This document shows, in pieces, positions 43,869-63,884 of a DNA stretch of 64,000 nucleotides. Where the stretch lies: IMG/VR virus record IMGVR_UViG_3300035181_000357, positions 1 to 64,000 of that record; one strand, given 5' to 3'. A model generated the notes under the pieces. That model was not told the origin of the DNA, ran no database searches, and was given only the letters and a program-made list of their open reading frames with translations. Made by a program: the position numbers and the translations under genes. The first letter of the stretch is position 1; every line of letters begins with the position of its first letter.

Positions 43869-43921
43869 ATAAATACCTCTATCATAATAGGAAATGACAG
43901 TCTATTAATGTAATGCTGTGA

Positions 43922-48223: not shown

Positions 48224-48258
48224 TTATTTCCTCTTAAGTCTTAGATACTTTAAAGGCT

Positions 48259-48293
48259 TGGACCCCGAGGTCGTTTAATTTCCTCGAGGTCCA
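48259..48293 (-). terminator. 12-bp RNA hairpin downstream of the sigma-like gene
   Basis: UGGACCUCGAGG / CCUCGGGGUCCA pairs fully (one G.U) only on the minus strand; weak U-tract. Confidence 0.5.
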
Positions 48294-48322
48294 TCTTGTC
48301 TTAATTAGCGTATTCTTTCCGG

Positions 48323-49144
48323 TTATACCTTACTAGTCTTACGTGTGTAGATCTTCCTCTTGTTGGGGATCTTCTGAAGTCCCTTAGAGTACACACTAGC
48401 CAAGATACGGAGTCTCGACTTGAGTCTATTTAGTTCTTCCATCTTGAGTCCGGCAACTTCACAGATCTCAGACATAGAATTATTCTGCATGAACAAGGTA
48501 GCCGTCTTCAGCGTATCTGGCTCGTTCTTCTTAAGGAATTTCACGAATCCTTTAACGAAGTGGGTAGTATCCATAGAATCTGCAAAATTCAAATCGACCA
48601 AGTGGGAACAGTTGTGTTTGGTGAACAGGTCTTCAAGAGTCACTGTTCCTGGAACATAACTTTCTGCTGATTCTGGAGCATCGAAGGAGATCATCAAGGT
48701 ATTGCGTTGAGTAATCGGCTCTCTGGTTCTCTTTCTGATACAAATCATATACTTTCTAGTAAGTAGAAGATTGATGTAGAAGAAGAATTTTCCAGCAGAT
48801 TTGCCACCAATTCTGTCACCCGAGAATGACATGATTCGATCTTTGATTCCCTTGGCCTGGCCATTTTTAGAGACTGTAAGAATATATTCTACCATATCAT
48901 GGGTGAAATCTTCTAACAGTTCGTTCGGACAGCGGTGTCTGATAAGCCAAGTCTTTATATACTTTGGATATCTGTTATTAAACTCTTCGAAATTCATTGG
49001 AACAACAAAGTCATCATCAACAGACACGACTTCCTTGTAACTGAAATCCGATTTCTTCGTTGCTAAATCCAGTTCCTTCTTATCTTCTTCTGTCATCTCT
49101 TCGTCAAGGATAACATCATTTAGGTCTGACAAGCGTTCCTCCAT
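48323..49144 (-). CDS. Sigma70-family (ECF-like) sigma factor
   Basis: LLEDFTHDM...KFFFYI...Y...IRK region-2-like; SMSEICEVAGL...L.RLKSRL region-4 HTH. Confidence 0.6.
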   Translation of the reverse strand: MEERLSDLNDVILDEEMTEEDKKELDLATKKSDFSYKEVVSVDDDFVVPMNFEEFNNRYPKYIKTWLIRHRCPNELLEDFTHDMVEYILTVSKNGQAKGIKDRIMSFSGDRIGGKSAGKFFFYINLLLTRKYMICIRKRTREPITQRNTLMISFDAPESAESYVPGTVTLEDLFTKHNCSHLVDLNFADSMDTTHFVKGFVKFLKKNEPDTLKTATLFMQNNSMSEICEVAGLKMEELNRLKSRLRILASVYSKGLQKIPNKRKIYTRKTSKV

Positions 49145-49171
49145 GGAGTTTGAAGTTGATACTCCTTGCTC

Positions 49172-49180
49172 ATTATATCA
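49172..49180 (-). promoter_or_regulatory. Extended -10 (TGnTATAAT) host-type promoter upstream of the sigma gene
   Basis: Minus strand TGATATAAT followed by an AAGGAG RBS. Confidence 0.55.
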
Positions 49181-49205
49181 GGGAGAATGAAATTCTAAAC
49201 AATCT

Positions 49206-50078
49206 TTATTTAGTTGGTACTCTCTTAAGCTGACTCTTCTGTTTTAGTTCTTCGAGGAGTCTCTTGTTGGCTTCTTCTAGAGTAGATAGTTTTCCCCTTA
49301 CCTCATCTAGTTCAACCTTCTGAGTTGTAGTCACAGTTTTGTTGGTAGAACTTAACCAACTATTTACTAACAACATCATCATTAATGATGCTAAAATCCC
49401 AATGAAATTAGTCTTTATCTGGGACAAGATCAGGTTGGATAGAATGATTATGGGTTCTTTCTTCTCACCAGTAAGGGGATTAAATCCTCGTTCTTTTAAC
49501 AATTCAGCAATAGCTATTTGTAGTGTAGGTAGTAATCTAAGGACTTCATCGTCTTTCATGTTCTTGAAGAACAGAATTATAGGAGAATGAGCTTGTAACG
49601 CAGTATATATAAGATCGATTTTAGCCATCGCTTCTTTTAACGTGACATCTATTTTTCTTCTATCTGCCATAGCTTCGTCTAATGATGCTTTTATTGCGAC
49701 GAGTTGATTATATATCGTTTTATATGTCCCAGCTACCCCAGATAATATACTTCTATTCTTTCTGGTCTCTTCTATCTGAGTCTCGGATTCAGTTGAAAGA
49801 GTTTCTACCAGTCGTTCGAAGCTATCACTAATACTAGAACAGAACTGGATAATTTGGTTTAGTTTCTCATCACCATCTTCCATATTATCAGACGAATTTT
49901 CTGTATAAGCTGAGAGCATACTCTGCAGTTTCTCCAGAGCCTTCTCCATATCGTTAGTGATTGATAGAATGTCTCTTATGTCTAGATATGCGGCTTCTGT
50001 AGAAGCATAGATCTCCTGAAGATCCTCTTTTACTTCTGAATTTGCAGGGAGAAACCTTCTTCTTCTATCGTCGGCCAT
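49206..50078 (-). CDS. Coiled-coil protein with C-terminal TM helix
   Basis: Long heptads, then FIGILASLMMMLLV. Confidence 0.55.
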   Translation of the reverse strand: MADDRRRRFLPANSEVKEDLQEIYASTEAAYLDIRDILSITNDMEKALEKLQSMLSAYTENSSDNMEDGDEKLNQIIQFCSSISDSFERLVETLSTESETQIEETRKNRSILSGVAGTYKTIYNQLVAIKASLDEAMADRRKIDVTLKEAMAKIDLIYTALQAHSPIILFFKNMKDDEVLRLLPTLQIAIAELLKERGFNPLTGEKKEPIIILSNLILSQIKTNFIGILASLMMMLLVNSWLSSTNKTVTTTQKVELDEVRGKLSTLEEANKRLLEELKQKSQLKRVPTK

Positions 50079-50087
50079 TGTCTCTTC

Positions 50088-50612
50088 TTATAGATGTTGG
50101 GGAACTAGAGATCGTCGGCGGATAATATTCTCTTTACTTTCGCTGGACAGAGAATCCATTCTAACTTTTATTAAAGATTCTAATCGCTCATTTGTTATTT
50201 TTATTTTAGCAATCGAATCTTCTAGAATTTTTGAACTCCTCCGAGGATTGACCTCTACTAAGGGGTTTATAACTTCACTTTTAAAAGGCAGTTCTCTATT
50301 AACAGGAAATATAACATCAAACGTTATCTTCTCATTCTTGAAATCTCTGCTGAACTGCCATAAAACATCCCCACCTTCCATGACATACACTTTCTCTTTG
50401 TCATCTAGGAGGGGATCATCATTTACATAAGATAATATCAATTCTTGGTCAGCAATCTTACATCTTGAATTTTTAAACAGAATCTTTGGGACACCACCAT
50501 CGTCGGCGATGACTACGATTGGAAACGGAACAGAATTTATGATCTCGATTAGGGAAGCTATAGGATCCTTGAGCCTCAGAATTTCTGTTGTTCGATGTCG
50601 TAACCTAAGCAT
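50088..50612 (-). CDS. Hypothetical protein with PAS-like N-terminus
   Basis: IINSVPFPIVVIADDG..KILFKN resembles the start of a PAS domain. Confidence 0.35.
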   Translation of the reverse strand: MLRLRHRTTEILRLKDPIASLIEIINSVPFPIVVIADDGGVPKILFKNSRCKIADQELILSYVNDDPLLDDKEKVYVMEGGDVLWQFSRDFKNEKITFDVIFPVNRELPFKSEVINPLVEVNPRRSSKILEDSIAKIKITNERLESLIKVRMDSLSSESKENIIRRRSLVPQHL

Positions 50613-50652
50613 AGTAATAGCCCGTAGATATTCTAATTATAAGGTAGGAAAC

Positions 50653-51108
50653 TTATTTATTACCCTGGAATAGGATTTCTAAAAATGGGAGCTGCGGTAG
50701 GAAAAGAATCCAGCAATAGAAGAGTGTGTTGAAAAACAAAGGGCAAGACATATCCATTCGATATGGGGAATTGTTATCTTTGTATATTTCTGGGACATAT
50801 TCTCCTGGAAACAACTGGGCTTCTAAAGATGACCTCTTTAGGATATATAGACCGACGGTCATCATACCTACTAGAAAGTAGATAGACACTGTCTTCCAAG
50901 ATAATCCGAGATTTAAAAACCATTCTAAGTACAAATGGTCATAATTATAATTAAATATCGAGTATAATACTAAGGCTATCGCGAGTTTAAATGGGGTCTT
51001 AGTCCAGAAGGGTTCTTTATTATTCTCAGACATACCCAACTTGTTATGTCTAGTGATTAGAAATGTAAATGACGAGGCTATAGATATGGCTATAAAAGCG
51101 TTTATCAT
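50653..51108 (-). CDS. Multi-pass membrane protein
   Basis: Three to four hydrophobic segments in 151 aa. Confidence 0.55.
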   Translation of the reverse strand: MINAFIAISIASSFTFLITRHNKLGMSENNKEPFWTKTPFKLAIALVLYSIFNYNYDHLYLEWFLNLGLSWKTVSIYFLVGMMTVGLYILKRSSLEAQLFPGEYVPEIYKDNNSPYRMDMSCPLFFNTLFYCWILFLPQLPFLEILFQGNK

Positions 51109-51135
51109 TGAAATGCTCCTACATCTTATTACGTG

Positions 51136-52992
51136 TTAGAAGCGACGACCAGCCAACCTACCAGGACGACCTGGGACATCCTCTCGAGTCATGGCCTTTA
51201 TTCTCTCAGACATCCTATAATTTGATAATGAAGATACTTCAGGATCGAAGTCAAGCCCATGTAGTAAAGGATCTATATTATTACCAGAAATAATATCATC
51301 CATTTTATTAGGTTCATCTTTCATAAATTGGTTAGCTAGATATGCAACTAACGCTACGACATCACACATGTCATCGTGGGCACCCTTTTCATTGGGAGCC
51401 TGTACTCTAATCTGGTACTTACTGACTATGGTGGCTTCTACAGATTTTATTTCTTTCTCGAAAATAGGAACATCTGGGAACCTGATTGTACCTTGATCGA
51501 TGAATCCCTTAAGTGTATAATACATTTGAGAATTGATACCAGTATTTAAATGTACCAATTCAAAATTCTCAATATCATTCATCTTCAAAAGCTGGGTGAG
51601 CATAGACCCACCATGTTGGTCAGTACAACCCTTATAACAAGGCAGAACAGAATTAAGCCCGATCATCCAGTTGAGGATATCCTCTAAAGGAATCTCTGTA
51701 ACATGTTCATATGGAGCCTCACCAACCATCTTGCGGCCGATATAATCATAGTATAATTGAATCCCAACACCATCAACATATTCAAGATGCCCAATAGCTA
51801 GAGCCGTGGCATCGTGTTTCATACCAAGATCTAGTGCCCAGAAGTACAGCTTTGAAAATTTCTCTTCTTGATATCTAACAGTATTCTCTCGTCCTCTATC
51901 TATAGCTCGTTCAATAGATAGAACAGGTACGTAAGATTCAGCAGAGTCTAGAAACTGTCCACCATACTCAGCTTTCCAGGTTAGGGAAGCAGATATGGCC
52001 TTCTTTCTCAGGTATTCAGAGTTAGAACGAGGGTTCATCTCAGCAGATGAACACATGAGGGTAAAAATTCCAGAATCTGGGCCATGTTTCATAGCCTCGG
52101 CATGAAGATCGTAGGCTTTACCTTCACGCTTCCATGGGCTGGTAATGGTTAAGATCAGAGATTCTAATAATCCTGTCTCAGTACTGGTGAAGTTCATGGT
52201 AGCTGGAGCTGCTGCTTCATATACTTCATCAGAGTTTGAACCCTTCTCATTCCTGAAGTGAGCAAACTCGTCTAGTGCCAAGAAATATGAGCTGGGACCA
52301 CGTACAGCATTCGTGGTACAAGGCCAGGCACCTATCTTAATAGATGGGATAACATCACGTTTGTCTTTATCAGCTTCAGTTACGAACTCCATGCTCTTAG
52401 ATCCCGGAGTCTTTCTAAGGTATGGACTAAAGAATGGACAGGAGTTAATGTCTGATTTAAATTTATCGTATAGACGGTTAGCACCAGAATTATCTTGTGC
52501 CAGGAAAGTGAATTCTATTGGAGAACCTTCAACCAGACCGAAATGTTCATGAGGAGATCGTATAGATAGAAGTTTATATAGTTTGAAATCTGCGATAGCA
52601 GATACTAACTGGGATTTACCACCACGTCGGCCAGCAAAGATAACAGCTTCGTTGAATCCTCGTTCTGGGAGATCTTGCCAATCTTCTACGTTTATTCTAC
52701 CTTCACTATATAGATAATCTAGATATTCTCGTTCAGTAAAGGTGTAGAGAACTTCTTCTGCGAACTTATCTTTTACAATTATGGTCCCCTCTTTATAATC
52801 CAGGGGAACTCCCAAGATGCACTTGTATATAAATCTTTGAACTGGATATAGAGTTACCTTTGGTCCAGAATCCCCTTCTAAAAAATCTATACCATTTAAT
52901 ATATTAGAATTAACAGATATTTCACTATCTACGATTTGACCTAAGATTGATGATCTAGCCTGATGAGAAAATTTATTAATCTTTACTGCCAT
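51136..52992 (-). CDS. Terminase large subunit
   Basis: Walker A AGRRGGKS, Walker B LALDEF, ITSP coupling motif, nuclease WALDLG...DATA and HDD..D. Confidence 0.9.
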   Translation of the reverse strand: MAVKINKFSHQARSSILGQIVDSEISVNSNILNGIDFLEGDSGPKVTLYPVQRFIYKCILGVPLDYKEGTIIVKDKFAEEVLYTFTEREYLDYLYSEGRINVEDWQDLPERGFNEAVIFAGRRGGKSQLVSAIADFKLYKLLSIRSPHEHFGLVEGSPIEFTFLAQDNSGANRLYDKFKSDINSCPFFSPYLRKTPGSKSMEFVTEADKDKRDVIPSIKIGAWPCTTNAVRGPSSYFLALDEFAHFRNEKGSNSDEVYEAAAPATMNFTSTETGLLESLILTITSPWKREGKAYDLHAEAMKHGPDSGIFTLMCSSAEMNPRSNSEYLRKKAISASLTWKAEYGGQFLDSAESYVPVLSIERAIDRGRENTVRYQEEKFSKLYFWALDLGMKHDATALAIGHLEYVDGVGIQLYYDYIGRKMVGEAPYEHVTEIPLEDILNWMIGLNSVLPCYKGCTDQHGGSMLTQLLKMNDIENFELVHLNTGINSQMYYTLKGFIDQGTIRFPDVPIFEKEIKSVEATIVSKYQIRVQAPNEKGAHDDMCDVVALVAYLANQFMKDEPNKMDDIISGNNIDPLLHGLDFDPEVSSLSNYRMSERIKAMTREDVPGRPGRLAGRRF

Positions 52993-53190
52993 TCTCTTCT
53001 CTCCACTTAGCCCATCGTTTTATTTGAATGACATCCGACATCTTTTTCTTAGACTCTTCTGAATGTTTCTTTCCTAGATTGGCATCTCGTAATTTCTGTC
53101 TAGTATCTACAGATGGATTTTTCTTAGATTCTGACATCTTTTTCTAGCTTCCTCGGACCATATTCTAGTTCTATTGAGTGTGGTGTTATT
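52976..53190 (-). pseudogene. Frameshifted NUMOD3-type homing-endonuclease DNA-binding remnant
   Basis: Reads WSEEARK[-1]MSESKK...LGKKHSEESKKKMSD; residual 53-aa ORF 52976..53137; no catalytic domain. Confidence 0.7.
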
Positions 53191-53193
53191 ACT

Positions 53194-53964
53194 TTAGCTG
53201 CCATGGGTCACATCTACTACCTTTATCTGGTCTTTTACTGAATTCCAGTATTTCATCAGACTATCAGAATTTACATCTTTTATACTATCTGGGTGATTCC
53301 ATACCCAAGGTATGATATATAGCTTAGTAGGCCATATCACTCCATCTGAAGTAATAGCTGACGGCATCGTCTCTATCAACTGAATAGTTAGAGAATCTGG
53401 AATGATTTCGTCTTCTATGGCTTTTTTAGCATACCATACTAAGTCATCATAGAACACGGACTTCTTTTCGAACAGACCCTGCAGAATCGAATGAAATTTA
53501 TAATCTTTTATATTCTGATCCAAGGTGTCAATCAACCGTCTTACTAATGCTCTGTTCTTAGCGACCTCTTTACGAAAAGTCAGAGGTGTGGTATTGTGTA
53601 CATCGCTGACTACACCCTCATCCATGTCATAATAGCATAGTATGATATCTGCTATAGAATCTTCATCCATAGTCAAGTCATTAAATGCAGAACCTGGTAT
53701 TTCAAAGATATACAGATTATCATCATCTATAACCTGAGATATCCTGGTTACAGAGTATGACAGAGCCTGCTTAATAGAATTAGCAAAGTATATTCTGCCC
53801 TTTTGAGGCTCCATTTGCCCAGCTTCAAAGGAAATATCCTTAGATTTTAATCCTTCTTTTAGGATATTATCTGCAGCCTCTTTAGTAGTCCCGTGCCACC
53901 AGGTCCTAGATTTTATATTAGGAGTTGGAGATACAGCGATTCTTCTGGTGAAGAGTCTGGACAT
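53194..53964 (-). CDS. ADP-ribosyltransferase-fold protein
   Basis: WWHGT....I..EGL ... GRIYFANS...A..Y ... YIFEI ... DED, the H-Y-(E) ART pattern. Confidence 0.55.
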   Translation of the reverse strand: MSRLFTRRIAVSPTPNIKSRTWWHGTTKEAADNILKEGLKSKDISFEAGQMEPQKGRIYFANSIKQALSYSVTRISQVIDDDNLYIFEIPGSAFNDLTMDEDSIADIILCYYDMDEGVVSDVHNTTPLTFRKEVAKNRALVRRLIDTLDQNIKDYKFHSILQGLFEKKSVFYDDLVWYAKKAIEDEIIPDSLTIQLIETMPSAITSDGVIWPTKLYIIPWVWNHPDSIKDVNSDSLMKYWNSVKDQIKVVDVTHGS

Positions 53965-53969
53965 ACATT

Positions 53970-56588
53970 CTAATCTTTCTTCTTGATGATGTACTTGACC
54001 TTTAAAGTCATAGTCTCTATATCGAGTTTCTCAGCACGAACAAATACTTCATATGTGAATCCAGCATCGCCTTCATCATTCCATACAGCAGCTTGTGCCC
54101 AGGCACCATTCAATGCATCAATCATATCAGTATCATTTAGACCATCAGCGAGGGCCTTGAAGCCAAAACCAGTCTGATCAACGGGGAGTATTCCAGCATT
54201 AGCTAGCAGAAGACCAGTCTCTAGATCGTTGAGTCTGAGAGTCCATTCCATTGGAGTGTCAGTGAATAATGGCTTTTGTGTAACCTGGAATCCAGAAACT
54301 AGAGTGGCAGCAATCTGGCCGCAGATTCTCTTAAGAACATCAGCTAATTTTACTTTGTTCTCTGCTGAAGCAGTCTTCGAAGCCTTTTTAGAAGCCATCA
54401 ATAGCGAACTAGGATTGATATCATCATGTGGGGCATTAAACATGTTGGTGAATCCAGGACCACGGAGGTTGAGTTCCTTACGTAGAGGAGCACCTTGTGG
54501 TTGACTTGGTCCGAGACCCATACCTGCTGGACCCTTTGTAGCATCACCTTCATCGGTCTTCTCTAACTGCATCTGTAACATTTCAGGTGTTGGAGAATGG
54601 GTGAATTCTCTTCCAACTGGTTGAATAGCAAGCTGTTCTGCCATTTCAGGATAGAAACCTTCTAGAACCTGACCAGGAACCATCAACGTGAAAGCTTTCT
54701 TCTCCAGGAATGATTCTTTCTTATCTACAGGAGGATCAGACCATGCTTCAAATCTCCTAAAGTTGTTCTTGTCAGAAAGCCCCTTGGTGAACTTCTCTCT
54801 TGCCTTTTCTGTCGAGAACGTACGTTCTTTGTTTACGACCTGATCCTTTTTATTAAATTCAGACCATTGAACCCCCCAATTACCATCAGCAGAGGCTGTT
54901 ACAGGTTTCTTTTCTTCCTCTTCCTCATGTTGGAACCAATCATCAGCTGACATTGGTAGTTCTTCTCTCAAAATCTCTTCAGAAGAAGCTTCTTTTAACA
55001 GTCCATGCATTTGTGCATACTCGATTGCAGATCCAAGCCAATCATTAGGGTTTAGATATCCGTCTTCGACGAGTTCTCCAACTTCTTCATCAGACCAGGA
55101 AGCAATCTCGGTGTCACCCTTATACAGGGTTACTTGAGCACGATCTCTCTCAAACCAGGTATCAACTCTGTATTCATCAGAGTCAGCAGATTCTACTCTC
55201 TTCAACTCGTCCTTCTGATCTTCGCCTTCAGCGAACTGATCTTCATCAGTTCCTTCTTCTAAGACATCTACTAGCTTCTTGTGTTCTTCTATGAATTCAT
55301 CAGCTGGCATTTCAACCACGATCTTAGCACCATGATCATCAGCAAGAGTTAGAGCTCCAGGAAGACCCTTTACCTGAGCAATCTCATCAGAGGCTGAAGG
55401 CATGTTGGAGTAATAATCCTGGATGATGTGTTGTACATCGAGAGAACCATTCTTGCCACCCGACAGGATCCAATCCTCTAAGGTTAGGAGATCATTCTGC
55501 ATCTTCTCGTAACGAGGTCCTTGACTCTCGTCTCCAGACTTATCCATCTTTCTAAGTTCTACTCTCAGATACTTGGTCACCATCTTTGCATCAGCTTCTA
55601 CATCATCAGATGCTTTCTTTGGATCTGGACCATCAACCATCTCTGGTCCAACAGTTTCCTTAGATCCTGGGGCACCATAATCTGGACGATTACGAAGGCC
55701 AGTTTCAGCAGATATTTTAGTCTTAGTATCTAAGATATCTTCAATCTTACTGAATAGCTTAAGTTCTTCTGGCTCCATGATACTCTCTTCGAGTTCTTCG
55801 ATGTGAGCAGCGGATAATCTGATCTTCTTTCTCTGAACTTCAGCTTTTACCAAGGAAGAAGCGATGAGTCTGAATGTGGTCTTAATTTTAAGATCCTTAA
55901 GTGCATCTTTTCCGATCGACTTGCCTTCTCCTAGACTGACCTTAATGTCCTCAGCTTCCACCTCAGATCCTTTACCAAGTTCTGGGTAAGCGTTGCCATA
56001 ACTAGGAGTCTTAAAGACATGCTGTTGAAGTGGGATAGATTCCACACGGAATGCACCAGTCAAGGCTTTGATCTGTTCGAAAGAGTTTGATAAGGCTGGG
56101 TTATACATGGCACAGAATACCTTGTCTCTAAGGTCTAGGAACAGGGTGTCTTCGTTGAAGTGGATGACCTTAATATCTGAGATATTTGCCCAAGCTGGAT
56201 GGAAGACTACTAAATCACATACTTCACCATTGGAATTGGTGAATAACATTTCTTTAGCCATCTTTAAAGTGTCTTTTGACATATCTTCAGAGGCTAGAAA
56301 CTGTAGTCTGGCTTCAATGGCTTCTTCCTGATTTAAGGAAGAGAATACACCAGAAGCTAGGAGAGCGATTGGGAAGTTTTCTGCTTTCTTACATACAGAG
56401 GCTGGTACTACATAGATATCACCAATAACGATATCTTCTCTATATGATTTTTTGCAGATCTCTAACTTAGCTACATTTCCTTTGTTAGCTTCTTTAGCAC
56501 CCTGAGTCTTGATAGCCTCAGCTACCTGGGCGATCATCTCGTCAGGTGCAGTGAAAGAAAGATATGATCTATATGCCTTAGTTGCCAT
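53970..56588 (-). CDS. Large acidic mosaic head/internal protein
   Basis: 872 aa of discrete segments separated by KKAS, KISA, LKEAS, VTASA, EKKAF and KKASKTASA. Confidence 0.55.
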   Translation of the reverse strand: MATKAYRSYLSFTAPDEMIAQVAEAIKTQGAKEANKGNVAKLEICKKSYREDIVIGDIYVVPASVCKKAENFPIALLASGVFSSLNQEEAIEARLQFLASEDMSKDTLKMAKEMLFTNSNGEVCDLVVFHPAWANISDIKVIHFNEDTLFLDLRDKVFCAMYNPALSNSFEQIKALTGAFRVESIPLQQHVFKTPSYGNAYPELGKGSEVEAEDIKVSLGEGKSIGKDALKDLKIKTTFRLIASSLVKAEVQRKKIRLSAAHIEELEESIMEPEELKLFSKIEDILDTKTKISAETGLRNRPDYGAPGSKETVGPEMVDGPDPKKASDDVEADAKMVTKYLRVELRKMDKSGDESQGPRYEKMQNDLLTLEDWILSGGKNGSLDVQHIIQDYYSNMPSASDEIAQVKGLPGALTLADDHGAKIVVEMPADEFIEEHKKLVDVLEEGTDEDQFAEGEDQKDELKRVESADSDEYRVDTWFERDRAQVTLYKGDTEIASWSDEEVGELVEDGYLNPNDWLGSAIEYAQMHGLLKEASSEEILREELPMSADDWFQHEEEEEKKPVTASADGNWGVQWSEFNKKDQVVNKERTFSTEKAREKFTKGLSDKNNFRRFEAWSDPPVDKKESFLEKKAFTLMVPGQVLEGFYPEMAEQLAIQPVGREFTHSPTPEMLQMQLEKTDEGDATKGPAGMGLGPSQPQGAPLRKELNLRGPGFTNMFNAPHDDINPSSLLMASKKASKTASAENKVKLADVLKRICGQIAATLVSGFQVTQKPLFTDTPMEWTLRLNDLETGLLLANAGILPVDQTGFGFKALADGLNDTDMIDALNGAWAQAAVWNDEGDAGFTYEVFVRAEKLDIETMTLKVKYIIKKKD

Positions 56589-56599
56589 CTTGTCTCCAA

Positions 56600-57088
56600 T
56601 TAATTTGTAATTTCTACTTTTTCTACTTCTCTTCTTAGTTCTGGTTCTCTTATAGCCATCATATCTCTGAATGCTCTAAGAATTTCGTTTGCCTTGTCTT
56701 CAGTATACCCAGATTGAATAATGGACTTTTTCATCATCGTTACTATTTCTCGTACAGCATACTGGAACTTTGGTCCATCGAAGTTTAGGACATCTCGTCT
56801 AGCTAACAGATCGTTATCTTGAAGGGTTTTACTAAGTTCTCTTAAGGCCTTTACCTGTGCTTCTCTTGTCTTCAGGCTGACTTGAGCCAGTGGGCTAGCT
56901 GCAATACCAGAGATCTCTCGGATGACATTAGCCATCTCAACAGCGATCATTCTATTAATGAGTGTTAATGGAACGTTGGGATCATCCACCATTTCCATTA
57001 TTTTACTATAGTTTACTGCTCTAGGATCTTTCAATCCATCGACATAAACTTGATCATTCTCATCAAAGGATATTTCAGAAGTTGCCAT
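56600..57088 (-). CDS. Hypothetical helical protein (terminase small subunit candidate)
   Basis: 162 aa, all helical; context only. Confidence 0.35.
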   Translation of the reverse strand: MATSEISFDENDQVYVDGLKDPRAVNYSKIMEMVDDPNVPLTLINRMIAVEMANVIREISGIAASPLAQVSLKTREAQVKALRELSKTLQDNDLLARRDVLNFDGPKFQYAVREIVTMMKKSIIQSGYTEDKANEILRAFRDMMAIREPELRREVEKVEITN

Positions 57089-57091
57089 ATA

Positions 57092-58414
57092 TTACTCTAT
57101 GTCTCCAACGTTCCCATAGGAACCGAGGTCAATGTCATGACCCTTTAATTCCTTGATCTCAACATCGAAATCTTGAAGCTTAGAAGAGTCTAATCCGACT
57201 TGTGTATTTAAGGTGTTTCCATCATAAGAAGGATCGCCGTTGGCAATCTTATTTGATGATACCTTATCTAGACCAGGGAAAGTAAGAAGAGTTCCACCGG
57301 TTAGACCACAATGCATACCATTACGATATGTGCAAGAAGCACATTTCTTGGCACCGACGATGGCATTCTTAGAAGCCAGTTTACCATGTAGGTACTTACA
57401 ATCAACACGATCAAGATTGATCTTTGACCCGGTCTTCTTTAGGTCATCGATATATCTCTTAGCAGCTACTTTAACCTTTAAGGTTCCGAACTTCTCACGA
57501 GCTTCTACGAAAGCAGCCTCAAAGGATTTCCCACTATCAATATCCTGTCTGAAATTATCAGAAGAGATACTATCTTCAGTGAATGTAACCTTGTCTCCAG
57601 CACTTCTGATAGAATATTGCTCATCTTGAGCTCTTGGAGCCTGGACCTGAACCTCATCCTGAACACCATTATGAATATCAGTCATAGCCTTCTTGCTAAC
57701 CTGCTTACCCAACTGGGCTGCTATTTTATTGACAACTTCCTGCAATTCTTTCTTGCTTGCTACGATAGGAAGTTTATAAAGATTACAACGTCCACCAGCA
57801 CAATGGCTGCATGAGTCACAAGCTGATATCTTCTTAACAGAAGCGGCTTTAACTGAACCTTCTCGCTTAATCTTATTGAAGGTTTCGATACAACCCTTAG
57901 AACCAGAACTCTTCATAAAGTGGTTTGGCTCAATGAAAGAAAGACCAACCAGGCCAGCTCTGTCGTTGAGATAATCGGCTGACATAGTCTTATTGAAGAT
58001 AGCCAACTCTGCGAGTTTATTCATCTTGGATTCGATCTTTTCAGGACTAAATCCTAGGTGAAGGAGGTCATCAATTCTCTTCAATACTTCAGAATCTGTT
58101 AACATCTTCTTCTCTAGACCCTCAATACTGGATCCAGACGCAGCCTTTAAAGCAGAGGCTAAGACAGATGTATCATCGTCGATAGCTTTCTCTGCTCGAC
58201 CTTGCCAGTCCTCATGATTGGGGATATTGGTTGCAGTTCTACCAGTGTTGGTGTGGTGACTCTTTCCACCTAACTCTTGTACCAAGTTATCAGATTTATC
58301 CTGAGATATGGCTTTGAATCCATCGCCACTCTTCTTCTCTTCCTTTGTATTTTCATACGAAGGAGCTACATCGTCAAGGATTTGATCTATAATAGATGCG
58401 TAAAATTTTGTCAT
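57092..58414 (-). CDS. Head-region protein with duplicated Cys4 motifs
   Basis: ACDSCSHCAGGRC and KCASCTYRNGMHC repeats. Confidence 0.55.
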   Translation of the reverse strand: MTKFYASIIDQILDDVAPSYENTKEEKKSGDGFKAISQDKSDNLVQELGGKSHHTNTGRTATNIPNHEDWQGRAEKAIDDDTSVLASALKAASGSSIEGLEKKMLTDSEVLKRIDDLLHLGFSPEKIESKMNKLAELAIFNKTMSADYLNDRAGLVGLSFIEPNHFMKSSGSKGCIETFNKIKREGSVKAASVKKISACDSCSHCAGGRCNLYKLPIVASKKELQEVVNKIAAQLGKQVSKKAMTDIHNGVQDEVQVQAPRAQDEQYSIRSAGDKVTFTEDSISSDNFRQDIDSGKSFEAAFVEAREKFGTLKVKVAAKRYIDDLKKTGSKINLDRVDCKYLHGKLASKNAIVGAKKCASCTYRNGMHCGLTGGTLLTFPGLDKVSSNKIANGDPSYDGNTLNTQVGLDSSKLQDFDVEIKELKGHDIDLGSYGNVGDIE

Positions 58415-58424
58415 TTCATATCCC

Positions 58425-58751
58425 TTAATCGTAAAATTCTAAATCGTCTAAAATATGTTTTAAAGAAGATTCAGGATCTCTTGAATCAGCTGCCATGAGA
58501 GTCTCAGAGTTATCTACTTCATTTGCAGAAGTTAAACGCATGATCTTACCTTCTTTTACTTCCCAGAAATCCTTAGAACTTGGGCACTCATATACATTTC
58601 CTGCTACTCTCATCAATCCTAGTCTCTGGATTACCGTATTGGCTGAAGCCATAATAGGTAAAAGGGCATCATGAGCCTCAGATGCCATATCAGACTGTTT
58701 TGGTATAGACAGGGAATGAATACTGGCTTCCACTCTCTTTTTCATTGACAT
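58425..58751 (-). CDS. Hypothetical head-region protein
   Basis: 108 aa, AGGAG RBS. Confidence 0.6.
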   Translation of the reverse strand: MSMKKRVEASIHSLSIPKQSDMASEAHDALLPIMASANTVIQRLGLMRVAGNVYECPSSKDFWEVKEGKIMRLTSANEVDNSETLMAADSRDPESSLKHILDDLEFYD

Positions 58752-58815
58752 CCTAACTCCTAAATCTACAGATATAAGTCATCATAATAGGTAAGAGAAG
58801 TTATTTACATGTCTG

Positions 58816-59562
58816 TTAATGGTTAGCTCTGGATACCATAATGTGATCGAAAGCTGGATCTTCTACGTCAATGTAGAAGGAACCTAGTAAATCAGGATCT
58901 TCTTTAAACAAGAAACTCATCTTTTCTAGTTTCCGTTTACTGTATCCCTGACCATTAGCACTCGCTTTGTCAATGAGGCCATATATCATTGCACCTAACG
59001 ACAGACTTAGTTCGTCATCCTTATCTAATAGAGCCTTTGAAACCTGCGATAGAACTCTTCGTACATCAGGTCTGTGTACATTGCTCTTCTTGGCTACAAT
59101 GTTAAAACTTCTATACTTTCTATAGTCTTCTATCAGAGTAGAAGTTTTTACACCTTTAAGCACATTCTCTAGTCCATTTGTAGACAGAACAGTACTAATT
59201 AGACCAGAATCAGGATTGGCCCCATATATAATTATGGCCCCAAGCTTCTTGATGGCCATACGAATCTTAAAGCTGCATATTGTTTGAGTGGATCTGTGTA
59301 TCTTTGCCAGGCACCATTGAGGCTTATTGATCATGTAATAACTTAGGAGTAATTCCTGGTCTTCAATCGAGATATTTCTTAAAATCTTTAGAAAATCTGG
59401 AAAATTCTCCTTTATATACATTGAGATATGTTCTTCAATCAAATCATTTTGAGTCTCTAACGAGACTGTTTGATCTTGAAACTTCTCATCACCACTCTCT
59501 TCGTATGCATCTACTGATCGTTTAGAGATTATTGCGTCGAAGTACGGGCTGATTTCGGGCAT
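58816..59562 (-). CDS. Sigma70 region-4-like / tandem HTH regulator
   Basis: LRNISIEDQELL..YY...KPQ..LAK.....Q.......RMAIKKL, plus a second HTH SFNIVAKKSNVHRPDVRR. Confidence 0.6.
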   Translation of the reverse strand: MPEISPYFDAIISKRSVDAYEESGDEKFQDQTVSLETQNDLIEEHISMYIKENFPDFLKILRNISIEDQELLLSYYMINKPQWCLAKIHRSTQTICSFKIRMAIKKLGAIIIYGANPDSGLISTVLSTNGLENVLKGVKTSTLIEDYRKYRSFNIVAKKSNVHRPDVRRVLSQVSKALLDKDDELSLSLGAMIYGLIDKASANGQGYSKRKLEKMSFLFKEDPDLLGSFYIDVEDPAFDHIMVSRANH

Positions 59563-59663
59563 ATAGTTAGTTCCTAACCTGGATAACTACTTTATTCATT
59601 CTAAAACTCCATGTACGCCAACGTTTACACGTTATCATTCACTTTAATTATTACCGATAAATA

Positions 59664-59697
59664 ATAAAAAGTCTCACATTTTAGTGAGACTTTTTAT
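59664..59697. terminator. Bidirectional intrinsic terminator
   Basis: ATAAAAAGTCTCAC-ATTTTA-GTGAGACTTTTTAT. Confidence 0.85.
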
Positions 59698-59714
59698 ATC
59701 CTACTTTTAAAGTT

Positions 59715-62342
59715 TTACTCAGCTACTAATTCAGGAGCTAGTTCAACATCCGATACAAATTCGCTTTCAGAACCTTCTTCAGAATCCTCTAGTTCCACAC
59801 CGAGATTATCGGCTAGATTCTCAACACCCTCAGCGAGATGGTCTAGATTACTATAGATCTCATTTAAGGACAAGCTAACTTCTTCTGGTTCCTCATCGGC
59901 TACACGTCTGAGACCAACAGCAAACTTCTTAGCAATACGCTTCTTAGCAATACGCTTCTTAGCAATACGCTTCTTAGCAATACGCTTCTTAGCTAGTTTG
60001 CCTTCCTTGGCTTCACCTTCTAGAGCCTCTTCCTCTAAGGATTCACCCTCTTCAGGAACAAGATCGTCAGGAGTCAGATTTAGATTCTCAGCAAGAGCAT
60101 CTAGAGCTTCTACCTGTTCCATGAACTTATCACGGAGTTCGGCAATGGCTTCACCTAGAGCTTCTGGCTCTTCCTCAGCAATACGCTTTAAAGTAGCGAA
60201 CTTGGAGGCAGCAGTCTTGGCTTCAGACAAGGCTTCTGCTTTTGCAGCTGCTTCCTTTTTCTTGGCGATAATCTGTGATAATCTTCCCATTGGTTTCTCC
60301 TGTGAACTGGTTACAGCGCTATCTTGCTTTTTAACAGACTTTTCTTCGTCTTCCATCTTGACTAGTTTCTTGGTATAATCGTTGACCAATTTGACCAGCA
60401 GATTGCTCTTATCGATGTTACCTTCTTTAATGAACTTGGTGATGCACTCTCTTAGGTTTACAATGGCCTTCTTGTAATATGAGAATGACTTCTGAGTCTT
60501 AGCTTCGAAATCCTTCCAGATCTCGTCGCTGACTTCATTTGTCAGAGTAGCATCAAAGAGAATAGCTAGATTTGGACCAACTTTCTTACCCATTGTTCTG
60601 GTAAGCCATGGGAAGAATTCAGCCTTGAACTCTTTAAGATCAGAAGAGCTCTCTAACTCAGTGTGGTCGTCAAGAGTTGGCTTGGTATCGAAAATATTAT
60701 AGGTCTCGTCACCAGTTCCAAATTCTGGCTGTACTTCCTGGTTCTTGATCTCAACCTTCTTCTTCTCTTCACCAGTCTCTGGATCGATCTCAACGGTCTT
60801 GTAAACCTTACCATAACCATAGTGTTCTCCGACCCAATCTCTGGCCTTGGATACAGAATAGCTGAACATCTTCTTCAAGAAAGTCGTTACCTGCTTCTCT
60901 AGTGGGTTGTCCTTGTCAGGAGCTCTGTTAGGATCAAACTTTAACAGAGTCTTCAACTGATACAAGTGAGTAATGATCATGTGGTGAGCAGCTTCGTCAC
61001 GCAGATCCTGGTCAGCAATAACCTTCTTGTAGATACTCTCCAAGTATGAACTCCAGTTCATATCCTCATCTACAGGGAGCCCAGCTTCCCTGATAGCAGT
61101 CTTGACATACAAGTCAAAGTCTTTGTTGTAGGAGGTGATCATGAGGTTTGAGAATCTTCTTAAGGTAGAGCCGAGGAGATTTGTTAAACTTGCTAGATGG
61201 GTTTTATTTAAGGTTTCTATTGAGCCGTCAAGATATCTTGCTTGAATTCTGAGATCATCAGTGGTTCGGGCAGCAGCGAGTACGCGGAACGGACGAGAGC
61301 CTGATGGCACCACATAGGACCCAAGCTTAAAGGCCTTCTTTAGACTTGCAATATTGGGTTCCATTGTTTCTAAGAAATTAGAAACTTCTTGGAAGTACTC
61401 TTCTTCATTCTGTGTAGCATTATAATAGGCCGAATCATAATTGTCTAAGTTCTCTTCGAAGTCACCAGCTTGGCCGTATTCTTCATACTTATCAAATGCG
61501 TGTAAGAATTCATATAGTTCAGATAAACCTAATTGGAAATCACTATATTCACTCTCTGTCATATCAAGCCACTGCATTACCTGAGCATCGTCGTTGGCAT
61601 CGATGAAATTCTGCCAGGCTTCACAGTCAGATGTTTCTTCCAAATCCTGAGGTAGATTCTTGACTACCTCTACTGGAATTTCATCCATATCGATATCTAA
61701 TGACATCTGGTGGGATTCTAGATCGAATCCTGGGAATCTCTCCTCGATTTTTCCTACATCATGGGAATTATCATCACAGAAACGGGACCAGGCATTACTC
61801 GTACCACTAATGTCAGTGTTATTCATGACGTCTTCAGCATCATCAAAGGAATGATATTCCTGGCCTGACTCTTCTGCATAATTCTCAAAAGCGGCATTGA
61901 CCAGTACTAATACTTTATTCACTTCTCCGAGAGTGCCCTCTTTAGGTAACTCGTTGAGGAGCATATCCCCTTGCCCATTTCCAGCATAGCCGTTTCCAAC
62001 CCACTGGCCGAATCCACCATTCTGAACCTGATAATGAAGCTTGGCGAGTGCAAACAACATCTTATGGGTATCGGAAGGAAGCTGCTTAAGCATCTCCTGC
62101 ATACTTTTATCACCCATCTGTTGCCAGTTCTTGTGAATCTCGCTGAGGGCCTTCTGAAGATAATCTTCATAGAACCCTGCGAACTTCGCATGAGGATTTA
62201 CAGCCTTAGACGATACAGGCTTCTCACGACCTTCTAGACCACGGTCTACAGAACCATCACTGGTTTCCTTTGCTTTCAGATGCTCGAAAGCTTCCGATGC
62301 AACAACGGTCTTAAATATATCTGCGGATAGTTTGTGACGCAT
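59715..62342 (-). CDS. Multidomain acidic protein: DMP19/DUF4375-like + sigma-like + scaffold-like repeats
   Basis: YQVQNGGFGQWVGNGY...DNYDSAYY; DEAAHHMI...KFDPNR...TTFL; duplicated EEPE..L.E......LA.NL C-terminal helices. Confidence 0.55.
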   Translation of the reverse strand: MRHKLSADIFKTVVASEAFEHLKAKETSDGSVDRGLEGREKPVSSKAVNPHAKFAGFYEDYLQKALSEIHKNWQQMGDKSMQEMLKQLPSDTHKMLFALAKLHYQVQNGGFGQWVGNGYAGNGQGDMLLNELPKEGTLGEVNKVLVLVNAAFENYAEESGQEYHSFDDAEDVMNNTDISGTSNAWSRFCDDNSHDVGKIEERFPGFDLESHQMSLDIDMDEIPVEVVKNLPQDLEETSDCEAWQNFIDANDDAQVMQWLDMTESEYSDFQLGLSELYEFLHAFDKYEEYGQAGDFEENLDNYDSAYYNATQNEEEYFQEVSNFLETMEPNIASLKKAFKLGSYVVPSGSRPFRVLAAARTTDDLRIQARYLDGSIETLNKTHLASLTNLLGSTLRRFSNLMITSYNKDFDLYVKTAIREAGLPVDEDMNWSSYLESIYKKVIADQDLRDEAAHHMIITHLYQLKTLLKFDPNRAPDKDNPLEKQVTTFLKKMFSYSVSKARDWVGEHYGYGKVYKTVEIDPETGEEKKKVEIKNQEVQPEFGTGDETYNIFDTKPTLDDHTELESSSDLKEFKAEFFPWLTRTMGKKVGPNLAILFDATLTNEVSDEIWKDFEAKTQKSFSYYKKAIVNLRECITKFIKEGNIDKSNLLVKLVNDYTKKLVKMEDEEKSVKKQDSAVTSSQEKPMGRLSQIIAKKKEAAAKAEALSEAKTAASKFATLKRIAEEEPEALGEAIAELRDKFMEQVEALDALAENLNLTPDDLVPEEGESLEEEALEGEAKEGKLAKKRIAKKRIAKKRIAKKRIAKKFAVGLRRVADEEPEEVSLSLNEIYSNLDHLAEGVENLADNLGVELEDSEEGSESEFVSDVELAPELVAE
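59926..59993. repeat. Perfect 15-nt coding repeat x4.5 encoding (KKRIA)4
   Basis: TTCTTAGCAATACGC repeated exactly. Confidence 0.95.
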
Positions 62343-62370
62343 ATTATCAGTCCTTGAAGAAGTAAGAGAT

Positions 62371-62568
62371 TTAGTCTAGGATTAGATCGTTTGGATCCCA
62401 AGACTGTTTGTCATCAGAAGATAACACTTCATCTAATACACCTAGAAACTCTTCGTGATCCTTGAAAGCAACATCACTGTGACCTTTGTCAGTAGCAGCA
62501 GTCTTTCCCTGTGCACTAGCATAGAGTCTGTTTAGAATAGTTGCATCTGGTTCTTGAATTTTAGCCAT
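62371..62568 (-). CDS. Small hypothetical head-region protein
   Basis: 65 aa, GGAG RBS, RLYAS/KTAA motifs. Confidence 0.6.
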   Translation of the reverse strand: MAKIQEPDATILNRLYASAQGKTAATDKGHSDVAFKDHEEFLGVLDEVLSSDDKQSWDPNDLILD

Positions 62569-62634
62569 GGTTATTTCTCCGAATAGTTATACCATCAATT
62601 AAAGTTCTGGAAGTCTAAATTGTATTTATTATGA

Positions 62635-63414
62635 CTAATGCGACTTCACAGGAGTTGTTCGTTCTACGACCTTTTCTTCTACCTCTACGGGTTTCTTTAC
62701 TACCTTCTTTTTCTTCTCTGGAACAGGTTTTTCTTCTACAGGCTCTTCCACTTCTTCCACTACTGGTATCTCTTCGATAGGCTCTTCTACAGGAGGGGGT
62801 TGTTCTACTAATTTCTCTTTTACGACAGGCTTGTTAATCTCAACAATTTCGTCGTCATCATCCTCAATAGGTTTGATAGTCGGAACCGTGTCATCATAAC
62901 GCTCTAACGTCTTCTCCACATTCTTATCCTTGAATTTCTCTAACAGCCTCTTTAGAAATGGATTTACTCTATCACTAACGATTTTGAGGTGTTTACAGAT
63001 TACGAACTGGAATCGTCTTGGATCAGTTGGAGCCTGATACTTATCTCGGGGAGTTCCTTCTAATGAGTCTCCTTGACCTAAGTTCCATTGTGCTCCCCAA
63101 TATAAGAAAGCTGGACAGCTACAACTGACTTTAACATCTAGATCTTTGATTGTAGATTTGTCAACAACCTGAGCCGTATCAAATCTGATTAATACAGTGT
63201 GGCCTCTGGGGTCAGAATCTTTCTCTTTGCATTTTACTTTGTATGTTAGTAGCATCTCATCAAGATCTACATTCTTAACAGACATATTACAGTTCTTAGC
63301 CTTAGCTACTGAGAAATCAGAAGTTAGTTGAACCAGATCTTTGATACTAAAAGCCACTTTATACCGGGATTGAGCTACCCAGTCACCGACTTTTGTTGTA
63401 ATCCAGACACTCAT
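62635..63414 (-). CDS. SWIM-type zinc-finger protein
   Basis: VSCSCPAF.YWG......CKH. Confidence 0.75.
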   Translation of the reverse strand: MSVWITTKVGDWVAQSRYKVAFSIKDLVQLTSDFSVAKAKNCNMSVKNVDLDEMLLTYKVKCKEKDSDPRGHTVLIRFDTAQVVDKSTIKDLDVKVSCSCPAFLYWGAQWNLGQGDSLEGTPRDKYQAPTDPRRFQFVICKHLKIVSDRVNPFLKRLLEKFKDKNVEKTLERYDDTVPTIKPIEDDDDEIVEINKPVVKEKLVEQPPPVEEPIEEIPVVEEVEEPVEEKPVPEKKKKVVKKPVEVEEKVVERTTPVKSH

Positions 63415-63431
63415 CTAACCCACCTATTAAA

Positions 63432-63454
63432 TCGGCCTTCATATAGAAGGCCGA
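63432..63454 (-). terminator. Terminator-like hairpin
   Basis: TCGGCCTTC-TATAT-GAAGGCCGA followed by TTT. Confidence 0.6.
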
Positions 63455-63473
63455 AATCCCAAAGCTATCTGAA

Positions 63474-63884
63474 TTACTTCTTCTTTGGGCGACCACCACG
63501 TTTTACGACGGCTTCAGTCTTAGCTTCTTCAGTGGTTTCTGTTTCAACTTCTTCAGTATTTTCGCCAACTTCTTCAACTTCTTCAGTGGTTTCATCTTCA
63601 ACCTCAACGACAGGAACGACGGAATCCACAGCAGGAACGACGACGGTCTCTACAACAACCTCAGGAGTCTTTACAGGCTCTTTAGATGCGGTCTTTAACC
63701 AGCCCTTCTCTTCCATTGAATCAACTGCGACATTTCTAATTTGGAATTGGGTTAGAAGATTATCTTCTCTATATACCACTAGGCTTTCTGTATCGGCATT
63801 GTAGACACAAGTATCTCCAACCTTTGACTGATAGCTGTGGTCCGTGAATGCTACAGAATATGCGAACGTATAAGATTTCATCAT
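63474..63884 (-). CDS. Hypothetical protein with acidic tail ending RGGRPKKK
   Basis: 136 aa, GGAG RBS. Confidence 0.6.
   Translation of the reverse strand: MMKSYTFAYSVAFTDHSYQSKVGDTCVYNADTESLVVYREDNLLTQFQIRNVAVDSMEEKGWLKTASKEPVKTPEVVVETVVVPAVDSVVPVVEVEDETTEEVEEVGENTEEVETETTEEAKTEAVVKRGGRPKKK

Follow-up and report, generated by a model that had tools for sequence, protein, structure and literature searches.

A [KR]-x-A-[S/A/G] motif concentrated in the head-module proteins of a jumbo phage is a candidate cleavage signal of its prohead protease

The DNA examined here, hereafter the window, is a stretch of 64,000 nucleotides corresponding to bases 1-64000 of the IMG/VR virus record IMGVR_UViG_3300035181_000357, which is 210,611 bases long and an estimated 69% complete; the source phage is a jumbo myovirus, kin of the Tunturiibacter phage Tunturi_5 and the Bacillus phage G. 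Near the end of the window ten genes, all on the minus strand, occupy positions 53194-63884 and are bounded by the genes of the major capsid protein (MCP) and the large terminase subunit (TerL). Read along the minus strand, the order of the module is protease, scaffold candidate, decoration candidate, MCP, the ten genes and TerL. The ten genes are the downstream part of one late head-morphogenesis operon, and the label of head region given to them by the first-pass annotation is correct since the region spans MCP to TerL. Proteins of this module carry a short motif, [KR]-x-A followed by Ser, Ala or Gly in that order of preference, which is a specific, directional and lineage-wide signal concentrated in head-module proteins and which occurs in the source phage and in hundreds of its relatives. 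The motif likely marks the cleavage sites of the prohead protease, with the products of these genes as its substrates inside the procapsid, a reading drawn from sequence comparison and given a probability of roughly 0.7.

The first-pass annotation had listed K/R-x-A strings from this region and its surroundings, and all of them are present in the genes concerned: MSRLFTRRIA in the 256-amino-acid (aa) protein, KFYAS in the 440-aa, KRVEAS in the 108-aa, RLYAS and KTAA in the 65-aa and KKASKTASA in the 872-aa protein, MRHKLSA, KTAASKFA, (KKRIA)4 and RRVA in the 875-aa protein, RKTA in the product of 25804-26223 and KRKTAA in the portal. Four of these strings, KFYAS, KRVEAS, RLYAS and MRHKLSA, were excluded as motif copies because they have K/R-x-x-A spacing instead. 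The motif is present in the 440-, 872-, 875-, 65-, 108- and 136-aa proteins and absent from the 162-, 248- and 259-aa proteins of the region, and in the 256-aa protein it is atypical, with Val after Ala; [KR]-x-A-[AS] is hereafter called its strict form.

Expected counts were obtained by shuffling within each protein, so that they reflect the protein's own composition. The enrichment in the head region claimed by the first-pass annotation is clear for the strict form, which is found 15 times in the ten region proteins against 4.9 expected (z 4.8), whereas the loose K/R-x-A shows only a modest excess (48 against 32.2, z 3.1; 45 against 31.6, z 2.7, after collapsing a tandem repeat). The comparison with other genes gave the contrast that had been anticipated, as the window genes at 1-50078, the portal left aside, have no excess of the strict form (13 against 12.5, z 0.14). 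Over the whole head module, from protease to ADP-ribosyltransferase (ART) gene, the count is 23 against 7.6 (3.0x, P 5e-6), and in the remainder of the genome the ratio is 1.22x. Control patterns made from the same residues permuted, reversed or shifted stay at about 1x; [KR]-x-A-G is raised too, and [KR]-x-A followed by a hydrophobic residue, at 1.1x, is not enriched. An unbiased scan of all three-residue gapped patterns in the head modules of the window genome and its relatives also converges on the motif. In the head module of the window genome itself, no pattern free of low complexity ranks above K.AS (12 against 2.2). K.AS is also the top pattern in the head modules of Tunturi_5 (24 against 4.2, P 3e-11) and the relative L007 (14 against 2.9), and in that of the relative L008 it is third (16 against 3.2), after a Cys motif and KTA, which overlaps it.

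The protease had been expected elsewhere in the genome and is indeed found there, outside the window, as a 302-aa head-maturation protease encoded at genome positions 66950-67858. It belongs among the prohead serine proteases by its match to phrog_18299 (E 3.5e-14), its conserved His and Ser and its position upstream of the scaffold candidate and MCP. By Atlas feature similarity the family adjoins Peptidase_S78, S80 and S77; Pfam Peptidase_S77 and S78 do not match the 302-aa protein, no Pfam annotation is attached to any homologue found, and a comparison with PDB sequences gave nothing significant. A collection made at 90% identity yields 424 homologues of the protease at E < 1e-5. At 50% identity there are 1004 representative clusters, which lie on contigs of up to 465 kilobases (kb), many of them 200-465 kb long. 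In 120 aligned homologues, which all share invariant E-H-[FY] and S-M-G-C motifs, a site is found within the first 70 residues in 115 and within the last 60 residues in 110, and in none within the core; the aligned N-terminal site is mostly KTAS and the C-terminal one mostly KAAS. Among 150 representatives at no more than 50% identity, the motif occurs at 4.0x the expectation in the N-terminal flanks, 3.1x in the C-terminal flanks and 0.93x in the cores, and in a scan of the flanks (38,099 residues) K.AS is the top pattern with 154 occurrences against 23.8 and R.AS is third. A logo of the sites reads hydrophobic-hydrophobic-[KR]-[T/A/V]-A-[S>A>G], the hydrophobic residues often standing two and three positions before the Lys or Arg. 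Many of the C-terminal flanks are long scaffold-like extensions, and many homologues are fusion proteins of 450-1000 aa whose C-terminal extensions are rich in the motif. The homologous protease gp19 of phage G has the same flanking arrangement, with KTAA43, KVAS248 and KIAS274. Right after the serine of S-M-G-C, the protease core also holds a zinc-ribbon-like insert, C-x-x-C ... C-x-H (a weak match to Pfam Zn_ribbon_3), which is conserved in phage G gp19 as well.

It is hardly credible that an abundance of Lys and Ala, or helical low complexity, accounts for the motif. Lys, Ala and Glu are more frequent in the region than elsewhere in the genome and one of the listed instances is a DNA tandem repeat, but the expectations already allow for the composition of every single protein, patterns of the same composition that are reversed or shifted remain at about 1x where the motif reaches 3-4x, the motif ranks at the top of unbiased scans in several relatives, and site positions are conserved at 25-35% sequence identity. 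This explanation is refuted, as far as sequence statistics allow, by the pattern controls together with the flank scan.

The motif is read as a cleavage site because the sites bracket the prohead protease and fill its scaffold, as seen with autoprocessing and scaffold removal in T4, HK97 and SPN3US (PMC10052503). The same string could also be an uncut signal for docking to a chaperone, to the scaffold or to the inner side of the capsid. Cargo-loading peptides of the HK97-fold encapsulins are docking signals of this sort, and the presence and conservation of the motif, which are what the sequences show, would agree with docking too. However, sites on both sides of the protease core and none inside it in 120 homologues form the pattern of autoprocessing, up to 18 copies per protein spread across linkers are better suited to cutting, and Ala is followed by a small residue (Ser, Ala or Gly) as at the sites of herpesvirus assemblin (PMC4498786), so that docking without cleavage appears improbable. 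A co-fold of the protease core with the 65-aa protein gave no answer and weighs neither way.

The two proteins with the most strict sites in the genome, six each, are the 416-aa scaffold candidate, encoded upstream of MCP at genome positions 65626-66876, and the Cys-rich 440-aa protein (57092-58414). The latter has seven [KR]-x-A-[ASG] sites in all, and its six strict ones compare with 0.86 expected (P 2.7e-4). In the orthologues of both proteins the sites are conserved or turning over, and the Tunturi_5 orthologue of the 440-aa protein, gp348, is extended at its N-terminus by a stretch in which KTAS and KFAS sites follow one another. From its sequence the 440-aa protein is likely a core or scaffold-type protease substrate, and these most motif-rich proteins look like chopped-up assembly proteins, not cargo.

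Sites are also found at characteristic positions in several smaller proteins. In the 65-aa protein (62371-62568) KTAA22 (62494-62505) lies ahead of a conserved acidic C-terminal peptide, and KVAA or KTAA occupies this column in four of five orthologues, with RLAA some eight residues upstream in the L007 copy instead; three orthologues have KIAA or KIAS at residues 3-5 as well. The 108-aa protein (58425-58751) has RVAG48 in its own copy, and in its relatives the variable N-terminal part bears sites and the C-terminal part is conserved. The 136-aa protein (63474-63884), encoded directly downstream of the MCP gene, has KTAS64 (63684-63695) and an acidic tail rich in Glu, Val and Thr. Outside the ten genes, the portal carries KTAA12 near its N-terminus (43824-43835, minus strand; context KRKTAA), and at least one site falls within the first 65 residues in all five portals compared, gp14 of phage G included. 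A KLAA near the N-terminus of MCP was rejected as a site, as it lies within the conserved N-arm and its Lys is absent in phage G.

The 872-aa protein (53970-56588) consists of a conserved N-terminal part of approximately residues 1-210, a variable middle and a conserved C-terminal domain (residues 742-872; 53973-54365), and its orthologues in Tunturi_5 (gp350), L007 and L008 can be aligned at the two ends only. Its sites are KKAS324 (55608-55619), KEAS532 (54984-54995), which is shared with L007 only, and KKAS734 with KTAS738 (54366-54389) directly before the C-terminal domain. Among the 92 homologues of the family, which are 484-1518 aa long, about 80 have K-[T/V/K/R]-A-[A/G/S] just before the C-terminal domain, as do all four lineage orthologues, and the family as a whole has 663 sites against an expectation of 222, a single protein having as many as 18. 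Many members start with a leader of the M-S-Q-Q-x-K-x-A type. The family looks modular, to judge from its sequences, as the variable middles of some members contain a GNAT domain, zinc ribbons, DUF7249 or a LAGLIDADG insert. In the member P0051 the LAGLIDADG domain lies at residues 378-443, which suggests an insertion of the homing-endonuclease or intein type in a head-module gene. A model of the window's protein built with AF2 from a 3-sequence alignment has a pLDDT of 36 and was not used for fold search; its sole confident stretches begin at residues 327, where it is helical, and 742, right after KKAS324-327 and KTAS738-741, respectively. Pfam and PHROGs gave no hit for this protein, the Atlas search was uninformative (the stored model has a pLDDT of 0.39), and a ratio-ranked pattern scan of the family was swamped by conserved Cys motifs and unusable.

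These features raise the possibility that the motif is a protease site but that its bearers are core proteins, scaffolds or giant propeptides, degraded and expelled before or during packaging, and not effectors, with at most small C-terminal remnants left in the head. The densest sites are in the scaffold candidate and the 440-aa protein, the latter with no recognisable enzyme domain, and the 872-aa family is conserved at its two ends only, its best-conserved site preceding the small C-terminal domain. Such a layout, a long N-terminal propeptide followed by a retained C-terminal product, is that reported for SPN3US head proteins (PMC10052503), and most of the 872-aa protein is of low confidence in the AF2 model. 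Destruction of most of this material as assembly scaffold is as simple an account as the injection of effectors. On the other side stand the GNAT domain, zinc ribbons and DUF7249 in the middles of some family members, the DMP19-like domain gained by the 875-aa protein upstream of a site, and, in this sub-lineage, the constant place of the ART-fold gene at the module's end; enzyme and binding domains are hard to reconcile with pure scaffolds. Such disposal is a tentative alternative, held to be less probable than the main reading.

The 875-aa protein (59715-62342) starts with an extension, continues with a core that is conserved and has two helical repeats in its C-terminal part. Of the aligned orthologues (L007, L008, L010 and Tunturi_5 gp345) only that of L007 shares the extension of some 337 residues. 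At the junction of extension and core, K-K-A-F at residues 335-338 (61329-61340) aligns column for column with the N-terminal RVAA of L010 and KIAS of Tunturi_5 gp345, and since it matches the orthologues' N-terminal sites, the DMP19-bearing module is placed upstream of an old site. The strict sites of the window's copy are KEAA696 and KTAA709, and K-F-A-T at 714-717 (60192-60203) and K-F-A-V at 806-809 (59916-59927) align with KFAS, KHAA and KFAA of the relatives. In the same C-terminal part (59916-60257) two helical repeats of about 60 residues, conserved in all orthologues, each begin with K-F-A-x-L-[KR]-R-[IV]-A-[ED]-E-E-P-E. The (KKRIA)4 string is encoded by a perfect tandem repeat within this gene, 15 bp x 4.6 at 59925-59993 (TRF, 100% matches, score 138), and since the closest relative, L007, lacks it, a recent in-frame expansion is indicated, to be counted as one event and not as four sites.

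Within the extension, residues 87-174 (61821-62084) resemble the DMP19 family (PF14300). The score is 21.2 bits when the whole protein is run through hmmscan and 25.5 bits in a six-frame search, about the Pfam cut-off of 25, and the L007 orthologue scores 31 bits. An N-G-G-F motif is present, and the match to the PDB DMP19 entry 3VJZ is weak (E 0.26). The residues thus form a borderline candidate for a DMP19-family domain, and membership alone does not establish DNA mimicry. The first-pass annotation had proposed a DNA mimic within a polyprotein, and what stands of this is a borderline DMP19-like domain in the 875-aa protein, upstream of a conserved site, although the match to the PDB structure is weak. 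Profiles of the core and of the N-terminal part found nothing significant among PDB sequences.

The 256-aa protein at the downstream end of the region (53194-53964) carries the leader MSRLFTRRIA (residues 1-10; 53935-53964). The ART enzyme had likewise been placed inside a polyprotein, but it is the product of a separate gene. Its match to Pfam PARP has E 1.6e-3 and 18.4 bits, under the gathering cut-off of 26.7, and comparison with PDB sequences gave nothing significant. The signature consists of His24-Gly-Thr, Tyr59-Phe-Ala and Tyr70, with spacings of 35 and 11 which we take to be PARP-like by comparison with those of PARP1. Tyr59 and Tyr70 are invariant in all five homologues, which are the only ones found, and His24 in the four that have the N-terminus, whereas a catalytic acidic residue is not evident, as Glu88, the candidate for it, is replaced by Gln in one of the five. 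The AF2 model (pLDDT 66) finds DarT1, Tpt1 and PARPs at the top of a Foldseek search, at E of at least 0.26, which is not significant. VIA-align gives Z 6.9 to Tpt1 and approximately 6.0 to cholera and pertussis toxins, values that stay below 8, from which the tool is trusted, but members of the ART superfamily (Tpt1/KptA, cholera and pertussis toxins, PARPs, DarT) make up nearly the whole of its top 50 matches. The protein is taken here as having a probable ART fold of the His-Tyr type and not as an Alt-type enzyme. K/R-x-A-[V/F] is found at residues 8-11 in all four full-length homologues, and the gene keeps its position before TerL in a 256-kb relative.

Similar leaders occur elsewhere in the genome. 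Among its proteins that start with M-[SFR]-[KRNS]-[LSA], taken from simple starts of open reading frames (ORFs), eight of twelve have K/R-x-A at residues 7-11. These are the ART-fold protein, the scaffold candidate, a metallophosphoesterase, three paralogues, a 265-aa protein encoded at 25005-25802 (leader MSKLDKFKVAL) and its 139-aa neighbour encoded at 25804-26223, whose leader MSKLTTRKTAL lies at 26191-26223 on the minus strand. Pfam and PHROGs recognised the metallophosphoesterase alone among the other leader-bearing proteins. The three paralogues (genome positions 159289-160110, 160103-160984 and 186304-186660) share the N-terminus MF[KR]..LLK[TS]A[AS].P, which is like a leader and has the motif at its end. 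The leaders resemble the capsid-targeting sequence of T4. As for the earlier proposal that K/R-x-A is a maturation or targeting signal of this lineage, the positions at N-termini of head proteins, at domain boundaries and in the protease flanks agree with it, while the ART site is not of the enriched form.

If the sites are cleaved, the motif-bearing proteins would assemble together inside the procapsid and be processed there at maturation. The protease would free itself from both of its extensions, the scaffold candidate and the 440-aa protein would be cut into small pieces, the short N-terminal leaders would be trimmed, and the 872- and 875-aa proteins would be split at their linkers, the predicted products including the 131-residue C-terminal domain of the former and a fragment of about 337 residues with the DMP19-like domain from the latter. 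Some retained fragments, and possibly the ART-fold protein, might travel with the DNA into the host and be active there, which is speculative. A more far-reaching version would make the K-x-A-S linkers and leaders a general loading-and-release code for an exchangeable arsenal of injected effectors in the phage G/Tunturi_5 clade. A domain placed between sites of the 872/875 type or behind a leader would then enter the procapsid, be cut free and be injected with the DNA, and the variable middles (GNAT, zinc ribbons, DMP19-like and others) would together with the ART constitute pre-made effectors for anti-defence or host takeover. From the sequences at hand such a code seems rather unlikely. The first-pass annotation had described the two large proteins as strings of cargo domains, and of this the modular families and the sites in linkers hold, but only one borderline domain is recognised in the two, and none in the 872-aa protein.

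Several observations weigh against cleavage of these proteins by the prohead protease. Taken alone, the window's 872-aa protein has four sites against 1.43 expected (P 0.057), which is not significant, and the 875-aa protein, with its two strict sites, is not significantly enriched either; the case for both rests on positional conservation in relatives. Conservation around the sites in the alignment of the 872-aa protein equals the protein average, with no local difference, and the family-wide P values are inflated because homologous sequences are not independent. The leader site of the ART-fold protein has Val or Phe after Ala. The scissile bond is itself a guess, placed probably after Ala by analogy with herpesvirus assemblin. 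Finally, because the 162- and 248-aa proteins have no motif, the region is not uniformly one of cargo, and their genes may be packaging or regulatory ones.

Of these motif-free proteins, the 162-aa one (56600-57088) is conserved, with orthologues in all relatives, and its Atlas features resemble the T5 small terminase, DUF1804 and Mu gp27 at 0.80-0.84, below trust level, which offers a weak lead to a possible small terminase subunit. The 248-aa protein (58816-59562) is a stand-alone helix-turn-helix protein, 47% identical to Tunturi_5 gp346, and not, as had been supposed, a sigma-like domain inside a polyprotein. Pfam finds Phage_antitermQ in four of six orthologues (best E 1.1e-4) and Sigma70_r4_2 in two (E 3.9e-3), and nothing significant in the window's own copy; no sigma-70 region 2 was found, and the pair of region 2 and region 4 domains above Pfam thresholds that would mark a sigma-70 protein is lacking. 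Its profile gave only a weak, non-significant helix-turn-helix match among PDB sequences, and homologues in IMG/VR were found only via a two-sequence alignment, the single-sequence scan having returned nothing. The third motif-free protein, of 259 aa (62635-63414), has a SWIM-like C-x-C...C-x-H motif and a long tail rich in Glu, Pro, Val and Lys; in Tunturi_5 its orthologue is gp336, which carries a tail-protein annotation, over the N-terminal part of the latter, and Pfam and PHROGs gave no hit.

The boundaries of the module are well defined, with TerL at 51136-52992 on the minus strand (phrog_2, E 1.3e-16) on the downstream side and MCP just past the end of the window, at genome positions 63990-64901 on the minus strand (phrog_2522, E 6e-47). 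A 169-aa decoration-like protein is encoded upstream of MCP, and a 1176-aa tail sheath was identified further upstream than the protease. The nearest cultured relative is Tunturi_5 (309 kb; MCP 66% and TerL 47% identical), followed by an uncultured 485-kb phage and then by phage G (MCP 37% identical). The ten genes are syntenic with Tunturi_5 gp343-gp350, with five IMG/VR loci and with Logan contigs, and conserved synteny of the block was counted in seven related loci. A megablast of 53194-63884 against phage records and a PHROGs search with all ten region proteins gave zero matches, and no virion RNA polymerase was recognised in the source phage. The gene order at 41613-52992 is unusual, with TerL followed by four small genes, a primase zinc-finger protein, a family-A DNA polymerase and then the portal (41613-43868), which lies beyond the primase and the polymerase. 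The portal is therefore separated by intervening replication genes from the MCP, protease and scaffold genes. A 53-aa ORF (52976-53137) overlaps the start of TerL. Its match to a 250-aa ORF located between ART and TerL in L007 (16351-17103) is confined to the last 68 residues of the latter, and from this alignment the first 180 residues seem to have been lost, or never present, in the window's copy. Elsewhere, an HNH endonuclease gene (genome positions 68770-69156) has a virion structural gene on one side and, on the other, the genes that lie upstream of the protease, and a 1744-aa ORF in the window (33246-38480), which has no PHROG hit, adjoins a 1038-aa protein with a PKD-like domain.

Neither a cutting rule nor the internal proteome was found described in the literature for the large clade of huge phages around phage G, which accounts for the 1004 protease clusters, and no cleavage motif was found reported for phage G or Tunturi_5. 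If the motif is a cut site, the rule [hydrophobic]2-[KR]-x-A-[S/A/G] would predict the head-internal proteins of hundreds of uncultured giant phages and would flag fast-changing modular proteins as candidate injected effectors. It is testable in two cultured phages, G and Tunturi_5, and the likeness to the Ala-Ser sites of herpesvirus assemblin makes it of evolutionary interest.

The arrangement can be compared with several known systems. In phage T4, leaders of about 10 residues end in the motif L/I-x-E, where the prohead protease gp21 cuts after Glu and so removes them. Processing there extends to scaffold, core and protease, and Alt is an ART of the R-S-E type. The T4 Alt ADP-ribosyltransferase is packaged in the head (PMC5512222). 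The source phage, here from its genes alone, is similar to the T4 internal proteins and Alt in its short leaders ending in a motif and in the presence of an ADP-ribosyltransferase-type protein in the set, but its motif is K/R-x-A, its ART has a His...Tyr...Tyr signature like that of PARP and Tpt1, and its protease matches neither of the Pfam families Peptidase_S77 and S78.

A second comparison is with the proteases phiKZ gp175 and SPN3US gp245, whose substrates include head and ejection proteins, the portal and the protease; the cuts are made at a motif of three residues, in some substrates at several places (PMC10052503). The cut is C-terminal to a motif ending in Glu, and in SPN3US the motif has been used for predicting further substrates (PMC10052503). 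Those phages are likewise jumbo myoviruses with many motif-bearing head proteins, the source phage being known in this respect from genes alone. However, the lineages are unrelated, as the MCP and TerL of the source phage find Tunturi_5, phage G and cluster-C-type phages and not phiKZ.

Herpesvirus assemblin, which falls in the same broad class of proteases for capsid maturation, cuts after an Ala that is followed by Ser or Thr, at the R and M sites YLQA-T and VQA-S, and frees itself from its scaffold extension (PMC4498786). The small residue after Ala and the protease fusions with motif-rich C-terminal extensions among the homologues are points of likeness, whereas the source phage has a fixed basic residue two positions before Ala and many sites per substrate instead of two, and a relationship in fold between the two proteases is suggested by feature similarity alone.

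The two large proteins also recall the polyvalent proteins of phages and conjugative elements, which are large, modular and fast-evolving, are encoded beside portal, terminase and head genes, and are predicted to be packaged, processed and injected, with ART, GNAT and other conflict domains recurring among them (Iyer et al. 2017, PMC5512222). Polyvalent proteins have at least two effector domains per polypeptide and often an embedded peptidase, whereas a single recognisable domain, the borderline DMP19-like one, is present in the 872- and 875-aa proteins, where neither an embedded peptidase nor any named polyvalent-protein domain was detected. Processing in the source phage would moreover fall to the separate prohead protease acting at K-x-A-S linkers.

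A last comparison is with the head module of phage G (gp2-gp27), in which gp7 (930 aa) has six sites and gp4 and the portal three each; tblastn found no homologue of the 248-aa or the 440-aa protein there. Overall, the logic is as in T4 and in phiKZ and SPN3US, with a different protease family, a different motif and a family of modular carriers that resembles the polyvalent proteins (PMC5512222) but has none of their embedded peptidases.

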